A DNA stretch of 64,000 nt from Perkinsus chesapeaki ATCC PRA-425. Taxonomy: Eukaryota; Protista; Perkinsozoa. This document shows, in pieces, positions 13,837 through 27,982 of this stretch. Numbering within the stretch: the stretch's first letter is position 1; every line of letters starts with the position of its first letter. The position numbers and the translations under genes were made by a program. Under the pieces are notes generated by a model that ran no database searches, had not been told where the DNA came from, and saw nothing but the letters and a program-made list of their open reading frames with translations. Location: NCBI GenBank assembly GCA_013115145.1, contig JAAPAO010000012.1:1-64000 (forward strand). Direction: 5' to 3'.

Positions 13837-15654
13837 ATGTTCCATTCTCCCCCCGTATTTAACACCCGTATATCCCGCAAAGTTCGGGTTGATGCTACCG
13901 GTGGATCGAGGCCACTGGGAGGCTCCCTCTCCCCTAGTAAAGTCCTCGAAAAGGTCTACGGCCGTTTCGCAGGGCCCCATGGGATGTCGGGAACTCAATG
14001 GGCCAAAATGTGCTATCAGGCAGGTCTGGCTGATGCCCAAGGAGCCCCCTTGGCGTCAGTGGACGCGGATCTAGTCTTTGTTGATGTAAGATGGGTCGAC
14101 GGGGGTGCGTCGAACCGGCTTAGGATTTTTCCGTGTTGCCCCTCCGAAGTAGAGCCCTAAAGTCTCCCGGCCTATTAAATACGTTCCTTACGGCTGAGAA
14201 ATCGCAAGCATTCTTTTGGTAAATTAGATCGATATTTTTCCTTTCCCTGCCACCATGTGTAGGCGGTTGCGTGAACTTATTTCGACACTGTGTGGGGCTC
14301 GCCCGCGGGCAACCAAAATTACGCGACAAAATTTAAATCCAGCAAGCCGAGGAAGGAACTGTTTTTGATACTTGATGAAGTAGAGCCACGGGATCGGGCT
14401 ATATGATTTCAGGGCGCCTGAATGCAGGGGGGAGCGCTACTGGCGCACACTGTCCTGGAGTGTTCCTGCTTGGAGGCCGCTGCAATTCAGGTTCAGAGGA
14501 GAGAGCTCAGTGTTAAGGGCGGCAAACTGCCTTACGAAGTCTTCGCTCAACAGGCCATACCTTCTCTGGCTCAAAAAGCCGGCCTGACTGTACATAAAAT
14601 AATAGAGCGGCTCGATGCCCTACCGGATACTCTGGCAGCATCAACACGATCGAGCATCACAGCCAGTCGGATGGAGGAAAGGTAGGAACTTCAGATTCTT
14701 CTGTCGAGTGTCAGCCCATTGCTCAGTCTGATGGAGCGAAGGATGTCCGGACCGGAGCGGTTGTACTATCGGCACCTGGAAAGGCGGTCATCCAATGGCA
14801 CCGAAAGAAAGAGCTTCAGGCGGAGGTCGCCTGTGGCCACTTTGAGGTCCCAGCCGAGCTCTGGATCTATAGACCTATCGCAAATTTGTGATAGAACTGA
14901 TGCGGACGTTAGGGGCACGAAGAAACAGCAGAAGCAATACGCCGGGGGGATGACCACCCACGCGGCGCGAGTGTCAGATAGGCTGTCGCAGTCCACGAGG
15001 AGCCTGAGGTCGCTCGATCGGCAAATGAGCTCGACGTCGGTGGCTAGCTTCCAGAGCGAGGGGGATCTGGTCGGGCCGGAAAGATTCTTTTACGATAAGA
15101 AAACGTATACCGGCACGGCTCGGCGGAGCATCGGCAGCGTGAAGAGATATAACTCCGTGGGAGTGCTGGCGAAACGAAATTCACTGGACGGTATCGCGGA
15201 GGCTACCGACGAGGAGGAGCTGCGGGCGATGTTGACCGGTAGAGACAAGCCTCAATTGAGCCCTAATAAGGCAGGCAACGGCAGGCCACCGCAGAGAGCC
15301 ATGCTGTCTAACGCTTCGTCTGTGACTGTGCTACCACCCGCCACTAGGATGGAGCCACCGACACAGCCGGGACGAATAATCATGGCTGCGCCGTCGAGGG
15401 CTACCTTAGTCGCGCCCACTCCTTTCGTTCCCTATTCTGTCCCAACTCAGCCCTCCTATGGTTCCTTCACGCCATTCCAGCCCACCCTCCCCTTCGGTCA
15501 ACCTATGCCTGTACTCCAGCAGCAGCGTCGCCTATCTGGCAGCTACTCGGCAGCAGCTCCTCTACATTTCGCTCCGCCTTCTGGGCTCGCCTCGGGCATG
15601 CCCATGTTCGCCCTATCGTCACCGTTAGGGTTCCAGCCTCCCTCTCGAGTGTGA
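13837..15654 (+). CDS. TPPP: TPPP/p25-alpha domain protein with low-complexity Ser/Arg and Pro-rich regions
   Basis: VYGRFAGPHGMSGTQWAKMCYQAGLAD...VDADLVFVDV, then LPYEVFAQQAIPSLAQKAG, then the C-terminal signature GPERFFYDKKTYTGTA. Confidence 0.75.
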
Positions 15655-16044: not shown

Positions 16045-18017
16045 ATGGACTCAACCCTTCTGGCCGCCTCTTTGGTGTCTATCATCTCTACCGCTGCAGC
16101 TCAGAGCACCCTAAACGACTGTATAGCAGACGGCTGCCCTCTGGCCACAGCTGCTGCCGTTCAGTGCATCACAGCCGGCGATATCGCCTTGCCGTCCTGC
16201 CAGTCTGCGGTGTGCGGCGGTCAAGCGGTCTCCGATTTCAACCTCCTCTGCGCTACTTTCGTTCCGAGCTGCTCCGATGTCTACTCCAACACCTACGCGG
16301 CTGAGTTCAGTTCTGTAGCAGCCGCGTGCTCGACCACTACCACATCAGTGCCCGCCACCATCGGCCCTACCAGCAGCGCATCTCCCTTGGCCAGCTGTCA
16401 AAGCGCTGGGTGCCCAGCTGATGTCGTCAGTGCTGTTGTGTGTGGTGCACGGGGAGAGGTGTACTCTGACAGCTGCCGGTCTACTATCTGTGCAAATGGT
16501 GTCTGGAGTCGGTTCCTGAACGAATGTGTTTATCAGCTCACTGCCTGCAATACCGACTATACCGTCACGTATCGCCTGGAAATGGCGGACGTCGAAGCCG
16601 TCTGCGCACTTTCCGCCCGGCCGGTGACGACCTCCACAACGACGACCCAGCCGAGGGATGTGGTGCCACCGCAGCTCGTCTCAGTGTCACCCCTTCCTGG
16701 CTCGGTGGTGACGCAACGGTCAACGCTCGTCGTAGAGTTCCAGGAGGATGTCCGGAAGGGCCCGAGGAGCATTCTGCTAGTGAGGACAGCCCCGAGTGAC
16801 CAAGTCGAACTGGGCGAGGGTAGCTGGCTCCGCTTTTCTGGGCGCTATCTGTACATTACACCACCTGAATTCGGGAGGCTGGCAGAGGGAAATGACTGCT
16901 TCTCTGTGCAGATCGAGTTCGGGTCCGTGCTGGACGTGGCCGGCAATCCCTTTGGCGGCTTTGCGAGCCTCGACTTCTGGGGCCTTTGTGTTGTCGATCG
17001 TGACGGGCCTCGAGTGAAAAACGTTGAAGAGGAAGTCCTTGGTGAAGACAGCATAGGTGTTGTCATTGAGTTCGACGAGACCATTGTGGCAGCGATGACC
17101 TTGGTCGTGACACTCACTGCGCAGAGCGACGCCCGGCAGAGGTCGATACCTGCCGAAATCGGTGCTGACCAGAGCTCGCTAGTTGTCACTCTTGACGGCT
17201 TGCTTCTTGGCGAACGGTATCGCATTGATGTGCCCGACAGGCTCGTGCAAGATTCCCTGGGGAATGCCTTTTCCCGCGCGTCGTTTAATGGATACTCGCT
17301 CCAGCTGCCAGCGCCCACCACCACCCCTGTCGTCCCAACGTCTATCATCGACCCGCCAGAACCGCCTAATCCCGTCGGGATTATTCTCTGTGTTCTGGCC
17401 GGTCTGTTGGTGGCCCTAGGCGCTGGATTCTGGTGGTGGCGGTCCAAGCAGCGACAAGCCTACATAGCGCCCGCTACTACTGAGAGTGGCGAGGCTGCTG
17501 GAGCGGCTAAAGTGAACAGAAAGTGGGAGGCCAGTGCTGTGAAGGCTGGTGGAGGAGTTGGGTTCGCCAAGGGAGCTCACTTGAGGGCGGAAGACTCTAA
17601 GAGGCCCAAGTCAGCGCCGCCGCCGATTTCTGGTAGGGTTCCCTTGCGCTGGTGGGGCGGAGGTCACATGCTGCAGGTTCGGAAACGATCGACAAGAAGA
17701 AGGTGAAGGACGAGGCGACGGACATGAGCGCCATGGAGGAGCGGCGAGCCAGAGAGATAGCGTCGGAGCTGCTGAAGGAGCTGGAGAGCATCGCTGATGA
17801 GGACGGTGGTGAGAGAAAGAAGGCACACAAGAAGATGTGCTTCACATGGTAAGCTACGCGATGGTTCCTTGGTACTCGTAGTCTTCGCAGGCACCCTGAT
17901 AAAAATCCCGAGGACCTGTCGGTGGCGACGGAGGTATTCCAGTGGCTTCAACGCCAGAAGGAGTGGTTCCTTGAGGGCAGCGATCAGCCGTCTCCTCGGC
18001 CGCCTAGTGAGATCTGA
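16045..18017 (+). CDS. Type I membrane protein: signal peptide, 2x 8-Cys repeat, 2x bacterial Ig-like (Big_5-like), TM, cytosolic J-like (HPD) domain
   Basis: Long first exon. Introns 17633-17676 and 17849-17890 restore the frame to give RKKAHKKMCFTW-HPD-KNPEDLSVATEVFQWLQ. The TM is GIILCVLAGLLVALGAGFWWW followed by RSKQR. Confidence 0.8.
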
Positions 18018-18196
18018 CTGTCGCCGGGGAGGAGCCCATCAGTATCAGAGTAACATTTTGTGCACCGGTGACACTTTCATGCATGCCGCATGTAGCCTTC
18101 GGAAGGTTGTTCGACTTTACCACTAAATCTGCGTTGAATTCAAGCAAGTCTCAATCAAGAGGAGCTCTCTCAGCTGCCTCCGCGTTCCGGCTCTGC

Positions 18197-20477
18197 ATGC
18201 ACCAGCATCAGCATCAGCAGCAGCCATCTGGCAGGTCCAACTACTCTCGTGGTGCCACGCCTGGTGGTGGAGGCCGCCGTGGTGGCGGTGGAAAAGGCCA
18301 GCAGCGCCCCTACAACGGACATTACCAGCGTCCTGTGCTCCCTATCCCTCAAGTAGAGCCCTGTGGCACCTTCGCTCACTCCTTCGCTCTCCGTTCCAGG
18401 CCGGCACCTACTCGGACGGTTTCTTGAAGCCCTCCTCTGCAGCAGATGGCCTGCTGCCTTCCCCAGCTGGCCCACCGCCGCCAGCGCAGCAGCGTACACC
18501 TCACAAGAAGACTCTGCCTCCACCGACGTGTTTGTTAACGCCCGAGGAGCAGGCCATGTGGGCCAGTGCACCGTAGGCTAGGTCCGGTCAGCTCTCTCCT
18601 CACCGACAACGACTCTATTAGTTCACCACTACTCGACCAATGATACGACTTATCATCGTATAGCAATTTCGTATATTGCTTCATCGTAAACACCATCGAA
18701 GATCTCCAACTGCACTCAATGCTGTCGCACAGACCCTGCCGCTGATGAGTCCACTCGGCCGCGGAGATTCACTGACAAAATGTCACCACTCCGCATCGCC
18801 CCTCCCTTCGCTAGTGATGGCCTTCGTAGTTTATGGGCGGGAAATTGCCAAGTGATCTTGAATGTGAATAATATGGTGCTTAGAGCTGATGGTCCGGCTT
18901 TAGCTGGACCCCTAGGTGCCATTGGTTCAATGACACTTATTTATATAAAAATATGTATAATCTCACTGGCATTGAAATTATAGATGTCGTTATACTAGTT
19001 GATAGTATTAATTATTAGTAAATATATTGGTTAATGTGTATGTTACTATGTCTATATGTCATAGTATATATTATACATGTATAATGCAACGATATCGCCG
19101 TCGTTGTTAGATACGCCTGCCCGGCTTGCCGAAGCCCCTTTATGAAGTGGTCTCAGTGCGACACTCACATCCTTTCATCACCCACGTGCCAGGCTGGGCT
19201 CGCCAACGAAGATCTGAAAGGGTGATGACCAATTGCCGTTTCCTTCGAGGCGACACTGTTGTGACTAGGCAGTGCGAGGCCTTCGCAGCCGCCCATGCAG
19301 GATCCCTCCGGCCCCCACCAGCTCCACCTGTACCGAGGCCTCCTCGGAAGGGGTCGGCCTCGGGAAGGAGCGCTACAGGGAGGGGGAGAGAGGGCAGACA
19401 GAGAGTCGAAACCGAAAGGGAAATCCAGGTAGGTGATCTGGTCCGATGCATGTTGGGAAGTATATAGTACAATATACAGGTGAAATAGAAAATGCATACT
19501 CTTATTATTCAAAGAACATCTGTGCTCCGTTTCTCAACAGTGGTGGGAGTTGGGACGCGGCTTCGCCCGTCAGCTCTTTGGTCACAGGAGCGACATTGTT
19601 ATCCGACAAAGATATTTTCGTGAGAACTCGATGATGTACTGTGGCGAGCCTAAAATATGAGCCTTATTATGCCAGGGACTCCCTGGAAACGGATGGACTA
19701 TACCTACCCACATGCACCCTTCTTATTCAGGCTATTAAGGATGAGTACGAGAAAGCTATCTTTGGCGGCCGTCGTGGTTCCATGTCTACCGTCAACGGGC
19801 TCACCCCGAGCAGCGCCGCCACTGCATTCAGTGCTGATACTGTCACAGCAGCCCCCACCCGTGACCATCATGCAGCCAGCGGTGCCTCGGGACCGATGGA
19901 CTACCACGATCTGATGGGTGGCGCGGACTATGCGTCCTCCGGGTAGGCCGAGCTCTTGTGGGCCCGTGGGACTTCCGAAGAGCCTCAGGTTCGGGCGGGT
20001 GTGTCTGATCTGTCAGATGGGGGAGTCCAGCTGCGCCCTGGCTCCATGCGGTCACATGCTTGCCTGCTACAGTTGTAGATGCCGCCGTGTCCTTGCCTGG
20101 CTGATCTCCTCCTGTCAGGCACCTTGGCCTTGCAGCTGAGGGATTGTCCCTGCTGCGGAGCTCACATACACCAATTGATTCAAGTCTGCCCGGTTGACAT
20201 CAGGCAAGGCGTTTCATCGACCGCTGTGAAGAGGGTCGGCGTCAGGCACTACCACCTGAACATATTTAACGGGAACGGCCTACAAATGAACACCGCTGGA
20301 GGGGCGGTTACTATCCCTCGATCCCAAGTCGGTAGCGCTTCACCGGCCTGCCCGACCTTTGACTTTAGGATTTCACACCAACTGCCGCGGCTAGCTCAGC
20401 CGGCGGGTGGATGCCGAACACATAGATGCTCTTTTCTGATTTCGCTAACGGGGATTTCAGATGCAGTCTTTAATTAA
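18197..20477 (+). CDS. C3HC4 RING finger protein with Gly/Gln/Pro-rich N terminus
   Basis: CLICQMGESSCALAPCGHMLACYSC...LRDCPCC at about 20002-20157. Multi-exon, with one long partly AT-rich intron at about 18580-19110. Confidence 0.7.
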
Positions 20478-20942
20478 TAACCAGCTGTTGTTTCATCACC
20501 GTAGTAGCAGTCTAGTGAAGTGACATTGGTTCCTTTTGGGAGCTATCTCTGTTTCGGAAGCACCGCCAGGCTGATGCTCCTTTAGTGTCCATTACCGTTG
20601 TCGTTTCGAAGCTGTACCATTCTCCTCTTAAACGAAGCTGCTATCATCGATATTACTTTTATATATTGTTTTCTCCTATTTTGTGTTTCGCTGCTAAAAC
20701 GTTCGTGTCCCGCGGTCGGGGCCCGACAGAGGCACTCCCCAGGGTGCCCTCACAACATGATCTGTCGTGCTGCACAGCATGGTCCTGAGGCTCGTTCTGT
20801 GGCTCAATAAGGTGTTGAGTTGAGTACCCGTTTCTGCAATCACTATTCACGGCGTAGTGAGTGGTTCGTTCGGGTAGCTGTGGGTCTGCAATAACGAGTC
20901 CTCCTCGAGCACCCACTTCAAGTAGTCCGCTTGCTTCACCCG

Positions 20943-22627
20943 ATGGACTCAGCCCTCCAATACGACCTGGAGGGGGTTGTCTCGGATGTGATTTGCGAAG
21001 ACTCAGATGATGGAAGTGCCGCTGAATTCGAGGCCCAGCTGGAGAATGCAGTCGCTAGTGATCGCCGAGGTCCCAGCCGCAGCCACTGACCTGGTCAACT
21101 CAGGTCGCGAGCGTATACAGCGAAGAAATCGCGCAAGAGGGCGACCCTCGACCGCAGGCTTGAGCGGAGGGGCGAGCAGCTGGAGCGGTGGCAGCCGGTA
21201 ACTTGCCTCCCGGAGGCTGCTTTTGTTGATCGATTTTTCTCAGCCCCACCACTGCGGCCGTCTGTGCTGACAGCCCACAAAAACAACAACGGCAATCTCA
21301 TGGCACTACCACGCATGGTGGTACGAGAGCTAGCCGATCAGCCAGCGCGAAGGCGTTTGAGGATGTTCTTGGCTACTATGTAAGTCTTGTAGGGCAGGTG
21401 GGTGACTAGTAGAAGTGATAGTAACGGAGGGTATGAATGGACCGCTAGGAGGAAGATATGAAAGGGGTATCCAATGGAGGTGTTATCTTTCGATCTCTCA
21501 ACTGAAGGCGTATCTTTCTATCGCCTTCGTCTATGTTGTAATAGCTGCATCCTCCGACAGCATAAACTAATACCTCTCTGAACTGCAGTAAATTTCTCTC
21601 CAAGAGGTTTACTCGCCCACTGTGAGCAGAGGGGCACAATCCCTCCAGGCTAGGCCTTGAGTGTCATGGAAGCGCTTGAATTTATTGCTTCCTGTAGAAC
21701 TCTGCAAAGCGGCGCTCACGGGATCTAGGACGGTCGGGTCCTCCGGGTCTCATACGATCTCGTCCAGCCAGCGCGGTCTGCCTGAGAGGTGGGTGATGCA
21801 CCGTCGAGCAGCTTGCCAATTTCCATCCTATGTAGCTGGCTCGGCCAAGAGCCTTCGCCGGCCAGTGAGCGCATCTTCGAGAGTGCATGGTGGAGTCAAC
21901 TCGCGCAGTGTCTCGGCCGTAAACAGCGTGACTAGGTTGGTTGACGGGAGCGCAGAGATGGCCGGAAGTGCAACGAGAGCACCTCCTCAGCAATCGCGCA
22001 GGTTGAATGGCCCCGTGGCCTCTTGTGTACCACTCTCCTTGCCGTAGACCTAAGTCAGCTGTGGAACACATGAAAATGCACGACAGAAAACACCGGCAAA
22101 GTGAAGAGAAGCTGTCCGCGCTTGTAGGCATGTGACGTGCTGGCCTGACGGGGCTCACTGTTGGGACGGTTTAGATAGAGCAAGCTAGCCACGAAGAAGA
22201 ATTCGCTCTACTGCGGAAGATGGCTGAGCTGAATCGAGCAGTGGAGGCTGATAGGCAGGCGGGCGATGCGATCGTGTACAAAATGCTGAACGGCAATAAG
22301 AAGGTCCGGCGCGAGAGTTTCGGAAATGGAGGGTCACTTTGCAGGAGGAGAAGATTGGCTGCTTCGTCGGCGCCGAACTTGTCGGCAAAATTTCAGAGGA
22401 TGCATTCAAACGGAAGTAACCTAGCTGAGCAAACGCCACCCAAGCGACCTCGGAAATATCTTTGTGGAGCTAGTTGCCGGGTACCCAAGTACTTAGCCCA
22501 GGGACTATCCCCGGGGGTTCCAAGACCAGATGCGACGGAATCATTTGTTGTCATCGTATATAATAACTTTATTGTCGCTCTGAAACCCATCTTACTCGTT
22601 TATTTTGGAAGTCGGAACGCGCTGTAG
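20943..22627 (+). CDS. Multi-exon hypothetical protein (low complexity, basic)
   Basis: MDSALQYDLEGVVSDVICEDSDD..., RRLERRGEQLERWQP and MAELNRAVEADRQAGDAIVYKMLNG... have plausible GT-AG junctions. No family recognised. Confidence 0.4.
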
Positions 22628-22653
22628 ATACAAGCACATTATGAGGTCACGAG

Positions 22654-25600
22654 ATGGCAGTGGGCCACCGCCGCCAGCAGCATCAGCAACAAGTAGTGGA
22701 GCCGGTGGTGAGATTTAGTAGGGGAAATTGGTATAACGCTGGAAGGCTTCAGGGCACAAGCAGAGCGTCTTGCGCTCACAAACGTCACCCGAAGAGCAGA
22801 AGCGACGTCAAAGCGAGATCCGGCGGGTCTTGGCTCATACCATGCGGTTGACTGGGAAGTTGCGTGAGCAGCTTGACGTGAGTTTGGGAATCTTCGAGGC
22901 TGCTATCAGCGCTGCTTTGATACTTAACCTCGGAGGATTTATCGACTCGAAAATGGTGGGCAAACTTTGGATCAATTCCGCAATTGAAGGGACAAGCTGA
23001 TCCGTCGCTCTGGTGGGAAAGTGACATTAAAAGCTTTCTCGTATGCAAAAACCTCACCGTCGCGATCCTACCGAGATGTCTACCTTGGTTAGCTATGGTG
23101 TTAGATAGTATCTGAGGCCAACCAGCAGACCGGCAGGAAGCGGTCGGGCTCGAGATCAGACATGGTTGGCTTTGCACCCTTTGTTGTCGAATAAGGCCGC
23201 TTCGTCCCTTCCACCCTAAGCCGAGTTCCTGACCGTGATGTGAGGCCTTTTGGGACTTGCGCTGCCATGGGACTGACCTCATCCTCGCTCTATGCCATCC
23301 AGCGCCTTCTGCACACCTCATCAGCGATTCCCGCTGCAATCACCGGTTGGAGCCAAACTCGGGTTTTGAAGTTCGTCAGAGCGGTAAAGAACCCGACCAA
23401 TGGAAGTTTTCACGCCACCAAGTGGGAAGTGAGTGTGGATGGTTCTACACTGGGATGACCGGGTGTCCGGTGTAGTTGCTGGAAGTTCTCGGCACTGACA
23501 ACTTGGTGGCGGGTGAGCAAATGTTTTCACTTGTGAAGGGCTCTGATGAAGACCTAACTGTGTCTATGCTCGAGCTCGCTTCCCTTTGCATTCTGGCCAA
23601 CCGGAACATAAGCGAAATGTCCAAGTAGGAGCTATACGGTGATGTATTTCGGTGACGAGTAGAGACAGGTTGAGATTTTTGCTGGACCTCTTCGATTGGG
23701 ATTCTGACCAGAAATTCACCGAAGTTCATCTGGTACAAACCTCAGCCAGTCGCTCCTCCGAGTAACGCCAGCCGTCAGGTTATGGTCGCTCAAACGGTCC
23801 TCTCCGCGCTAACGAAGAGCATCCAAGCAACTGTCCAAGCTGTTGGCGGACACCCCAAGGTCGGGGTCACCTGGCTTGAAGCTGGGTAATGTCATTGAGC
23901 AGGTCTCACCTGTGGAGATGGCGAACTTCGGTCGACTCCAAGACACCTGTCGACGGCTTTTCAGCGATAATATCGGGAAGTCCCCGGGAGTGCTCACACG
24001 CGAGGAGCTTATCGCGTACATGATGGATCCCTCCGGCAGCCTGCACTGTGTAGGTGGCCCTCCCTGAAGTTGAAGACGAATTACTTTGCCTGGCAAGGTT
24101 GTCAGAATGCTGTCAGCTCCGAGTGGAAGTGAAGAGGATGTTTCAGAGCCAGACGACAAAGCCTGCCAGGAAGAGGGTCATGAACTCGATGTTTCGAAAA
24201 CGAGCTCTGAGTTCGTAGACAATAACGAGTCAGCAGCTATCTGGGGGGTGGGCACAGGATACTCCCTTCAGAAAGGAGTGTCAGTGTTGGCTGCAGACAC
24301 CAGAGACAGAGGCCTCAAGGAAAGTTAGCTTCTTTGGGAAGTGGCTGATAAGGAAAAAGAACGAAGTAGAGGCTGCGGGACGGTATCGCCAACCTCGTGT
24401 TGGGAGTTCCTACTGTATTGATCAGACATGGCAGAACACCGAGGACGAGCCGCGGCGGCGAGACCATCGTAAAGCAGTGGCTCCGATATTGTTTGGACTC
24501 TGTCGGTTCTGCCTCGTCATCTTCGATAGCGTCCCATGGCATTTTCCAGAGCCCTGCTTCGACTTCCTTAGCTGCTCTACGAGTGAGTCTCCAGTGGCTC
24601 GCACTTAGGGGGGCCGGTGCACTCAGGTGCGACTCCACCTTGCATGGCTTTCTTGTTCTGCCCGAGTGTCCTCTTTGAGAAGCTTCAGGGCTAAGCACAT
24701 TCTTGGCGCTGGCAACATTTGCCTTCCAGGAAGCATGTTGGTAGAGCTCTCACATCGCAGTTCCCTCCACCATCATCTCCAGACGTGCATAGGAGAACTT
24801 CGGTTCGTCGAGGCAAAACTAGCAGCCGCAAGTACCGATGAAATCCCTGCCTCGATCCTCGAGGAGGCTCTGGACGCTTGCTTAAGGGTGAGTCGCCGCG
24901 GTGCGCGGGGATGGCTCAGTGGTTCACTGTGATGATCTCAGTGAATGACTTCTGTAGGAAGCGACGGATCTATGGCGACACCTGGCGAAGAGCTGTCGTG
25001 AGGTACCGAAAGGAACACAAAATATGTCCCTTTTCTTGGACGGGGTCGTTGAAGGTTGCAAAGTAGGCGTCGATAGTACCGAAATTTCTTCACGTGCCTT
25101 GTAGGCTATAATTGCGGGGTCATCAAGTAGTTGTATCGAGAACTCTACGGTAGCGAGATGCTACGGACTCTAGCAGCCCAGCGCTCCAGGTCGAGGAGGT
25201 ATCTCGCTTGATACTTGACAAGGCCGTGCTTCGTAATGCTGCTATCAAAATGGAGCTCAAGCAGCCGGTTGGTGCATGGCGAAGTCCCGGTGCTGATACT
25301 GAAGGAAAAGCTCATGGCCTGGAGCTTGCTATTACTAGGCTCGGCGCCCTATTAGGTCGCATGACTAGCACCACGACTGTGAAGGAAGCCAAAAAGTGAG
25401 GGTCTAGTTGGGAGGCGGGGGCCTGGTCAGCCATATTTTATTCCTGGACTTACTGGCGTGTCCTCATCAAACTCGCGCTACACAATAAGCTTTGAATCAT
25501 TTCTGGTGAATAACCATTTCACATTTCCTTGCGCTGTTTCTAATACGTAGCAGGGATGCGTGGAGTCGATAGATTCCTATTGCCTGCTGGTTCGTATCTT

Positions 25601-27982
25601 CTCCACAAGCTCGCCTGTAGTGGCTCCATCTCAGACTGGTTTCAACGGAGATCGAGGATCTCCTACCCTTGGTTGGCGGTCCCCTCTGTAGTGTACGGCA
25701 AAATCTACTGGAAGCTTTTCTAAGAATGCGAACGGCTGAGAAAGTGATGGCCGAAGGTGCTCTGGCCGCACTGCGGTATGTTTGTGTGGTGCAACCTCTT
25801 GCGAACGTGCCTGATAGGCTTGTGGGTGACGAATTGGACCACGTCGACGGAAAAGAAGGGTTCAACGCAGAGCAATATCCTATCGATAAGGCAAGCCATC
25901 AGGGCGGCGCTTCGCCGGTGAATCCATATCCAGATCGAAAGGGCCTATACAGACGTCACTGTGGAGCGTTCCCTAGATGCAGCCCTCGATGATCCCTCTA
26001 CGTCTTCCTTGCCCGTCTCGGCAGCGTGCGCTTTTGGCTTTGGTGCCGACGCCTTCTCTCTCAACCCATTAAAGGTAGCCGATGCCTTGGAAGAGCTGGC
26101 AAGTCGAGTCGACTGTGTGAGTGGTCTACGGCTTGAAGATACTTTAGAGGTCATTAAAGCACTGCAGTGCAGTTCGACTGTCCCTGGCGCCGAGTCTGAC
26201 AGGAGACCGAAATTTCTTATTCGGGCGAAACAGTCCGCCTGCGCTCATGGATGGCCATCCTCCGAGGGCCTAGAAGAGGCCCTGGGAGAATATGGTAGCT
26301 CAGTACCGTACATGGACGAGGTTTGGAAGGCGGTGATCGATGACCTAATGAAGGCTTTGAACGAAGACCGCGGCTCCGTGTCCACTGATGTGATTAAGGT
26401 GGCTCAGCGACATGTGCAAGGCCGCCTCAGGAGAATCCATCGCCTCATTTTCGATCTTACTTGCCACGGTATACTCGACTCACCAAATCCTGCCATTCAG
26501 GGTAAGACGGTCCCTGCCTTCCTCGGAGACTGTCACCTTGTTCTCAGACTCCAGGCTGCGTTCCCCGCTCCCTGGATCACTACAAGGCCCGGGCTCGCCC
26601 ACTGTTGTCTTTGATTCCTCGAATCGCCTGCGGTGCGGCCGTCACGCCCAGATGGCTTGGTTCGCCGGAGCCCTGAGTGTCCCAGCCTTACGGGCCCATC
26701 AAGATGGGGACACGGCGAACAACTTTGAGAGCGTCAACCGCAGAGCCGGCGAAGCCAAGGTGCTTCAACTTTTGTGTGAAAGAAAGCTGATCTCGTGGAT
26801 GACAAGTGGACGAGGCATCGTTGAGGAAATGCAAGATAGCAAGATATCCATGCTGGAACAATACGTCCGTGACTGCTTCTTCCATCATTTGCAAGAATCC
26901 GACGAGGTTTCCCTTGGTGACCAAAACAGACACGCTCATGTCGATGAAGTGCCGCCGCCGCCCGAGTTGCATGATTGGGGGCGCGCGCCTTCTGCCGATG
27001 TATTCAATGTTATCGAAGACGCCAAGAAGTGTCCTCGAACCTGGGAGATACTGTCCGAGTTGTGCGCCGGCAGTGAGGAGAGACGAGCCCGAGAAGCCGT
27101 GGTGGCGATGCGGTGGTGGACGTTGGCTTTGTCGAGGTGAGCTCCGATTGGAGAAAGCCTGGCAGTAGCCGATGGACAGACAACTGGAGCTCGAGCTGGC
27201 TCTTGTTAAAAAGAGTCACCAACATACAGACGAGAAGGAGGAGGAGGTGACTGCAAATTACATCGCAGTGGTTGACAGGAGGGTCAAGATAGCGGTACAG
27301 CGCTTCATAGAGGTATCGAGAAGGCCTCTAGGAGAGCACAGCGCGCCGTGCAGGTGACGATGGTGCGTCCTGGTGCAATAGGAACTAGGGCCTTCCAGCG
27401 TGTAGAGGAGCTGATTGAGATCGCTGCCGCAGAGGCACTCCGCTCCCTCCAGTCTGTCTACGTCCAAGTATTTCGTCAAACTGAATCCATGCCAGCCCGC
27501 CAAGTTAGGATACCGAGCATCTTGATGGCGACGAGGTCGAACCTATGATGGGTGACATGCTCCAATCGTTCCTCACTGAAGTGGATAATCACCGTGTCAA
27601 GTTCATCCGCAGAGTCACCCACGGTGCTTCGGAAGGGGATGAAGGCCCTCCAGGAAAGTTTTCTCGTTCAACCTCCCAGAGACGGAAGTTCTCAGGCTTG
27701 GTGGTCAGCACTGAGACTGTCGAGAAGATCTTGAGTGGTGTTCAAAGCTCGCTCGAGACTGTACGATAGCCCCGCCGTGGGCAACTGGAAGCTTTGTCGT
27801 GTCAGGATCACCTCTACTGCCGTCTATTCGAGGATGGACATGACACGCCTCGAGCAGCCATGGATGATCCCTTCGATCTCGAGCTGGCTTTGTGGATGGG
27901 GAGCATGTCTGTGCTTGAAGCTGTGAGGGAGGCCTTGGCTATCCTTAGGAGCTCTGAGACCTCTCCCATGGAAGGAGCATGA
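22654..27982 (+). CDS. Large multi-exon hypothetical protein (possibly two genes)
   Basis: A chain of helical-looking exons (e.g. VLTREELIAYMMD, LRFVEAKLAAAS, LEELASRVDCVSG, MLEQYVRDCFFHHL, DLELALWMGSMSVLEAVREALAIL) separated by short introns. No family recognised. Confidence 0.5.

Follow-up and report, generated by a model that had tools for sequence, protein, structure and literature searches.

A family of predicted membrane-anchored J-proteins with bacterial-type Ig-like ectodomains in Perkinsus and dinoflagellates

A gene of Perkinsus chesapeaki ATCC PRA-425 is predicted to encode a class C J-protein that is anchored in a membrane and recruits Hsp70 from the cytosol, a reading to which we give a probability of roughly 0.75. 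The gene lies in a 64,000-nt stretch of genomic DNA (assembly GCA_013115145.1, contig JAAPAO010000012.1, positions 1 to 64,000), referred to here as the window. It occupies window positions 16045-18017 on the plus strand, the strand of all features described below, and consists of three exons separated by two GT-AG introns. The product appears to pair an extracytosolic region built from cysteine-rich modules and bacterial-type immunoglobulin (Ig)-like domains with a cytosolic tail. This tail ends in what looks like a genuine and functional J domain, which belongs to the sacsin (DNAJC29-like) subtype.

Sequence evidence carries the identification of the J domain; the evidence from the fold lends support but does not decide the matter. 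Tool runs for the window protein were made with an identical stored protein (P0005) and with the Perkinsus olseni orthologue (P0001). Compared as a single sequence with solved structures, the P. olseni tail matched the J domain of KIAA0730/sacsin (1iur) at E 3.4e-9, and a profile made from 16 family tails matched the same PDB entry at E 9.2e-13. The next matches of the profile were DNAJB8, HCG3, DNAJB6 and DNAJB2 (E 1e-7 to 3e-6), with C5, A1, DnaJ and Ydj1 also present; the entries reached at E <= 0.01 were 16 J domains and no other kind of protein. The whole domain covers approximately residues 541-612 (17709-17966, with intron 2 inside). Its HPD motif (residues 588-590, positions 17892-17900) is invariant in 16 family sequences. 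Conservation of HPD, on which the first-pass annotation had staked its proposal of a cytosolic J-like domain, thus extends from the Perkinsus orthologues to the dinoflagellate homologues.

Beyond HPD, the columns that are invariant across Perkinsus and dinoflagellates comprise E, R, K, K, C, W, H, P, D, K, A, F, Q, Q, Q, W and L, with R, K and K in helix II, followed by W-H-P-D-K and then by A, F and Q in helix III. When positions are counted from HPD towards the N-terminus, the invariant basic residues coincide with what we take to be R22, K23, K26 and R27 of DnaJ, in which the basic face of helix II contacts Hsp70. The J core (residues 556-610, mostly exon 3) is 78% identical between the two Perkinsus species. 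Its proportion of nonsynonymous differences (pN) is 0.11 and that of the protein as a whole is 0.25; saturation has been reached at synonymous sites (proportion of synonymous differences, pS, ~0.75-0.83). Judged from these values, the J core is the most constrained segment of the protein.

AlphaFold2, run on the alignment of 16 tails, produced a J hairpin with a predicted local distance difference test (pLDDT) of 87-93 in the core, helices at model positions 21-40, 46-59 and 66-88, and HPD in the loop at 60-65. In a Foldseek search with this model, 1iur came first (probability 1.0, template-modelling scores 0.55/0.61) and the remaining list consisted mostly of J domains. VIA-align placed the model on 1iur with Z 6.9 and on the DnaK-bound J domain of DnaJ (5nro_B) with Z 5.2. 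The root-mean-square deviation was 2.7 Å over 60-61 residues for the latter and likewise for the J domain of the Plasmodium Hsp40 PFA0660w (6rzy_A). The sacsin J domain, the closest relative among solved structures, can substitute for that of DnaJ in Escherichia coli OD259, and the H33Q substitution abolishes this activity (PMC2667285).

The J domain becomes visible after splicing. The longest open reading frame (ORF) at the locus encodes 554 amino acids and stops at 17706; two short ORFs in different frames lie downstream of it. Joining 16045-17632, 17677-17848 and 17891-18017 gives an open coding sequence of 1887 nt for 628 amino acids. As the first-pass annotation had deduced from the removal of two introns, the spliced tail reads RKKAHKKMCFTW-HPD-KNPEDLSVATEVFQWLQ, with ..KKAHKKMCFTW-HPD-KNPEDLSVATEVFQWLQ.. 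around the motif. Exon 1 (16045-17632), defined by the ORF list and the splice reconstruction, specifies residues 1-529 and the first base of codon 530; it contains the putative signal peptide, the ectodomain, the transmembrane helix and the proximal tail, and is 100% identical to residues 1-530 of the deposited protein KAF4677523.1. Intron 1 (17633-17676; 44 nt, GTAGG..GCAG, phase 1) restores the reading frame when removed. Exon 2 (17677-17848) encodes the tail linker, J helix I and helix II (ERKKAHKKMCFTW, up to the TG of a Trp codon). Intron 2 (17849-17890; 42 nt, GTAAG..GCAG) falls between the TG and the G of this Trp codon, which immediately precedes HPD, exactly where the codon had been said to be split. 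Retention of intron 2 leads directly to a TAA (17850-17852). Exon 3 (17891-18017) supplies the HPD loop (17892-17900), helix III and a short C-terminal extension that ends at a TGA (18015-18017).

Comparative data support both introns, and their sizes are in keeping with those of other introns in the window (37-61 nt). In the P. olseni orthologue (59-61% identical), both positions are likewise interrupted, by introns of 48 and 44 nt, of which the second also splits this Trp codon. The exon flanks are near-identical in the two species, and the introns themselves differ in sequence and length. The spliced protein also agrees with the start of KAF4677523.1 at 625/625 residues, so the public P. 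chesapeaki model contains both introns; its later exons are found, 100% identical, farther downstream in the window. In both public annotations, that of P. chesapeaki and that of P. olseni, the exons are joined.

The protein is predicted to be a type I, single-pass membrane protein whose N-terminal part is extracytosolic and whose tail is cytosolic, a topology that is well supported but not proven. A transmembrane helix (17374-17439, residues 444-465; Kyte-Doolittle window mean 2.62) is followed by the basic stop-transfer sequence RSKQRQ, and every family member has one strong hydrophobic transmembrane segment. Eighteen cysteines precede the helix and one follows it, a ratio that recurs across the family. 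Several dinoflagellate homologues carry a WW domain, a cytosolic module, in the corresponding tail. The proposed orientation thus draws on the leader, the 18 versus 1 cysteines, the Thr-rich linkers, the basic residues after the helix and the WW domains in homologous tails. Between the membrane and the J domain, the tail contains the motif HLRAEDSK (17578-17601). The AED tripeptide within it stands out from an otherwise low-complexity region and is invariant in the full-length alignment of Perkinsus and dinoflagellate members (15 of 15 sequences). It may serve as a linear binding or sorting motif.

The ectodomain has the composition that the first-pass annotation had described, namely two modules of eight cysteines, Thr-rich stalks and two Ig folds of bacterial type. 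A signal peptide is predicted from the sequence at residues 1-20 (16045-16104), with the hydrophobic core LLAASLVSIISTAAA, and in the P. olseni orthologue residues 1-19 form a hydrophobic segment at the N-terminus. Module 1 (16120-16329, residues 26-95) was recognized by a regular-expression match to the spacing C4C9C10C4C11C6C18C, and module 2 (16396-16605, residues 118-187) has identical spacing. Eight copies of the module can be aligned, with 21 invariant columns, and AlphaFold2 models it as a compact four-helix unit made of helices only (pLDDT 88). No sequence relatives of the module were found outside Perkinsus. Neither Foldseek (E > 5) nor a wide VIA search (best Z 4.7) gave a convincing match to its fold in the PDB. 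In the ESM Atlas, the shape search stayed at template-modelling scores < 0.5 and feature searches were empty. A weak Kazal_2 match (E 0.11, 13 bits against a cut-off of 22.8) was rejected as spurious because the module is predicted to be all-helical; it has eight cysteines, and Kazal domains are small alpha/beta folds with three disulfides.

The stalks correspond to three Thr/Pro-rich linkers in the ectodomain. The membrane-proximal part of the ectodomain matches the SbsA-type bacterial Ig-like family Big_5 (PF13205) in two stretches (E 5.3e-10, 40.4 bits against a gathering cut-off of 23.6), and the motif strings quoted for the two proposed Ig folds are both present. The first domain extends over approximately residues 205-318 (16657-16998; best stretch, residues 205-304). 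The second, which corresponds to the second Pfam stretch, is Big_5-like, covers approximately residues 320-425 (17002-17319), and ends in a conserved D..GN motif. It aligns with the second Big_5 domain of the dinoflagellate members, and homologues score 35-67 bits for Big_5. Among solved structures, no sequence relative of the ectodomain was found. A word-based protein search with the ectodomain, restricted by a length filter, returned P. olseni only.

The first-pass annotation had suggested looking for the same domain order in other myzozoans, and it does occur there. At least 13 dinoflagellate proteins, mostly derived from transcripts, share two Big_5 domains, a transmembrane helix, a tail and a C-terminal J domain. 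They come from Cladocopium sp. Y103, Durusdinium trenchii, Symbiodinium species, Gymnodinium smaydae, Yihiella yeosuensis and Ansanella granifera, and further members were recovered from MMETSP, marine metatranscriptome or Logan assemblies. An exhaustive phmmer search with P0001 returned 853 matches, mostly giant bacterial proteins with multiple Big_5 domains that cover residues 185-440 only; among the best 150 of the 853, at least three eukaryotic proteins also match the region from the transmembrane helix to the J domain. A search with the tail region of P0001 returned P0001 itself only. A word search with the J tail of one of the three eukaryotic proteins identified 12 proteins of 527-891 amino acids, 11 of which have Big_5 on record and the remaining one WW.

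In a full-length alignment, the common core consists of a variable Cys-containing head, two Big_5 domains, the transmembrane helix, the low-complexity tail with AED and a J domain at the extreme C-terminus. The Big_5 pair has a conserved cysteine pair and the D..GN motif across the family, and proteins end 0-40 residues past the J domain. The helical pair of 8-Cys modules was seen in Perkinsus heads only, and the dinoflagellate heads had no Pfam match. In several dinoflagellate lineages (P0059, P0093, P0166-P0170), a WW domain (PF00397, up to E 6.7e-7) lies between AED and the J domain; it is absent from the Perkinsus and Symbiodiniaceae members. The presence of the core design in both Perkinsus and dinoflagellates suggests that it is older than the split between them.

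We found no paper on this architecture, or on membrane J-proteins of Perkinsus or dinoflagellates, and among the matches listed the family is so far confined to these groups. In this respect the earlier statement that no described family was known to have this architecture still stands. What has to be added is that databases already hold the spliced proteins, under automatic, partial or misleading names. One P. olseni entry in UniRef is called 'J domain-containing protein' and the Durusdinium trenchii protein 'SbsA Ig-like domain-containing protein'. Symbiodinium fragments (P0193 and P0194, in the cluster of P0164) are named 'SACS, partial' in NCBI. The latter name, inherited from the resemblance of the J domain to that of sacsin, is a misnomer; none of these proteins is a sacsin.

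The limits of the gene can be drawn in other ways, and two of these bear directly on whether the J domain belongs to the membrane protein and ends it. Exons 2 and 3 could form a small gene of their own, for a cytosolic J-protein that begins at an internal ATG near 17725, and the membrane protein would then end unspliced at 17706. There are in-frame ATG codons within exon 2 (MSAMEE...), and the support for intron 1 is comparative. We nevertheless regard such a split as scarcely credible, and exclude a separate small gene because dinoflagellate ORFs carry the transmembrane helix and the J domain together. These transcript-derived ORFs read uninterrupted through ..C(L/F)xWHPDKN.., and complete single-transcript examples unite Big_5, transmembrane helix and J domain in one protein. 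In addition, an intron that restores the frame is present at this site in P. olseni as well (neither of the P. olseni intron lengths, 48 and 44 nt, was counted as a multiple of three), and both public annotations join the exons.

At the other extreme, the deposited model KAF4677523.1 (FOL47_000911) is a single protein of 2584 residues with exons that map to window positions 16045-27979. If it were correct, the J domain would be internal and followed by a RING-finger region and a long C-terminal region. The model bypasses the TGA at 18015 through a third, 167-nt 'intron' (18007-18173) and then continues into a RING-finger gene and a third gene; the GTGAG at 18007 is a good donor, and the locus is annotated as one protein. 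We take KAF4677523.1 to be a probable merge artefact of three genes, and consider the single-protein model very improbable, on four grounds. At the syntenic place in P. olseni there are three separate models of 633, 388 (RING) and 1413 amino acids, the first of which is the J-protein with its own stop. The bridging intron has 167 nt, whereas the other introns in the window have 37-61 nt. For the RING gene there is a separate ATG near 18206, which aligns with the P. olseni start. Finally, every dinoflagellate homologue (13 of 13) stops 0-2 residues past the J domain. The merged genes would thus be the membrane protein with the J tail, a RING-finger (zf-C3HC4_3) gene from approximately 18206, and a gene for approximately 1500 amino acids at approximately 20952-27979, for which there were no Pfam matches.

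The donor at 18007 lies 8 nt upstream of the TGA, and with acceptors at 18042 or 18048 it would define an intron of 36-42 nt, a typical size. A small third intron of this kind could be real; it would change the last 1-3 residues only, and these residues are uncertain. P. olseni has a third intron here, followed by a last exon of 17 amino acids, and no counterpart of this intron and C-terminal extension was recognized in the window. Upstream, a plus-strand gene at 13837-15654 encodes a Ser/Pro-rich protein and is syntenic with a P. olseni gene for a 467-residue protein that lacks Pfam domains.

Several observations count against a membrane-anchored J-protein that acts on Hsp70. Pfam DnaJ (PF00226) scores the Perkinsus and dinoflagellate tails at 18.6-22.3 bits (E 1.4e-4 to 2e-3), below its gathering cut-off of 27.8, and for this reason we assign the tail to a divergent J subtype. 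The AlphaFold2 model has three long helices where a canonical J domain has four. The structural matches, by Foldseek E-value and by VIA Z score, are of modest strength, which is common for small helical domains, and BAG bundles come out near-equal (Z 5.3-5.5). Both P. chesapeaki introns rest on comparative data, the signal peptide and topology are predictions from simple hydropathy and cysteine counts, and the Hsp70 link is a prediction for every member of the family. The membrane of residence could be that of the cell surface, the alveolar sacs, the endoplasmic reticulum (ER) or endosomes.

Some of these observations would suit a J-like relic, in which the fold and HPD are kept and the partnership with Hsp70 is lost, so that the tail would be a helical protein-binding module only. 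The tail falls under the Pfam threshold, its helix I is atypically long with no separate helix IV, and BAG-type bundles align about equally by shape. Yet degenerate J-like domains usually lose HPD, and here H, P, D and the basic residues of helix II are invariant from Perkinsus to dinoflagellates. The J core is also under the strongest constraint in the protein, and its nearest relative among solved structures has been proven to work as a J domain (PMC2667285). A relic appears improbable in light of this conservation. A different alternative retains the J mechanism in full and changes location alone: the protein could reside in an internal membrane such as the ER and act in quality control like DNAJB12/B14, with the Ig-like part in the lumen and no role as a surface receptor. 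Transmembrane J-proteins of the ER with a cytosolic J domain that recruits Hsc70 are well documented (PMC3968126), and exposure at the surface is itself a deduction. On the other hand, features typical of exposed surface proteins are present, namely Thr-rich mucin-like linkers, disulfide-rich modules and SbsA-type Ig domains, and the conserved C-terminus (..DWYLKE in dinoflagellates) lacks a KKXX- or KDEL-type signal. We consider internal residence unlikely, while giving it appreciable weight.

If the protein is a membrane-anchored J-protein, its action can be sketched from what is known of J domains in general. These domains steer Hsp70, and membrane-tethered versions define where clathrin uncoating, ER quality control and mitochondrial import take place. 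HPD and the basic helix II of the tethered J domain would serve as the docking site for cytosolic Hsp70 in its ATP-bound state, and docking would trigger ATP hydrolysis, upon which Hsp70 would clamp onto proteins next to the tail. Candidate clients are coat, adaptor or cytoskeletal components, or partners bound by the WW domain or the AED motif. The ectodomain would set the place, and possibly the timing, of Hsp70 recruitment.

The first-pass annotation had gone further and proposed a surface protein that couples extracellular binding to cytosolic Hsp70. Both the coupling and a location at the cell surface are inferences. In the fullest form of this idea, the protein would be a chaperone-coupled receptor, in which binding of a ligand or clustering of the Ig-like ectodomain at the surface of Perkinsus and dinoflagellate cells, coral symbionts included, concentrates the J domains of the tails and switches on Hsp70 locally. 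We regard this as a tentative and rather doubtful extension. If true, it would provide a receptor output module without a kinase, G protein or ubiquitin ligase of its own, and could drive uptake, uncoating, or remodelling of the pellicle or cytoskeleton.

As a candidate that can be tested, the family may connect the exterior of the cell, or the lumen of an organelle, with cytosolic chaperones in a group with poorly known surface biology. It spans a genus of oyster and clam parasites as well as free-living and coral-symbiotic dinoflagellates. Two errors in public records, the merged gene model and the misleading 'SACS' labels, are put right as well.

Sacsin (DNAJC29, 1IUR) has the closest J subtype by both sequence and fold, with the motif ..RKK....L.LKWHPDKNPEN..A.EVF..LQ in common. 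However, it is a soluble cytoplasmic protein of 4579 residues with UbL, Hsp90-like SRR repeats and HEPN after the J domain. Pfam searches of the family recovered only Big_5, DnaJ and, in some members, WW, and no UbL, Hsp90-like repeats or HEPN.

Among membrane J-proteins, Drosophila Wurst (DNAJC22) is multi-pass and resembles the family in having a C-terminal cytosolic J domain. It differs in that it lacks a large Ig-like ectodomain and its J domain is ordinary rather than sacsin-like; no homology was seen outside the J domain. The J domain of Wurst brings the Hsc70/clathrin machinery to the membrane and acts in the endocytosis of luminal matrix proteins (PMC7414880). DNAJB12 and DNAJB14 are single-pass proteins in which a cytosolic J domain recruits Hsc70 to the ER membrane (PMC3968126). 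Their J domain is N-terminal, and they are class B proteins of type II topology with a small luminal DUF1977 and no Big_5 or Cys modules. Pam18/Tim14 (DNAJC19) and E. coli DjlA combine a minimal transmembrane anchor with a C-terminal J domain and confine Hsp70 action to one face of a membrane. Unlike the proteins described here, they have tiny or no extracytosolic domains and act in the mitochondrial matrix or the bacterial cytoplasm, and only the J fold is related.

Bacterial Big_5 surface proteins match both membrane-proximal modules of the ectodomain, with hundreds of matches at 25-33% identity. In contrast to the present family, they form long repeat arrays, are secreted or bound to the cell wall, and lack the eukaryotic tail of transmembrane helix plus J domain. 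Membrane J domains are thus a known kind. What is new in the Perkinsus and dinoflagellate proteins is the combination of a large bacterial-type Ig ectodomain, a single predicted transmembrane helix and a C-terminal J domain of sacsin type, with WW as an optional addition.

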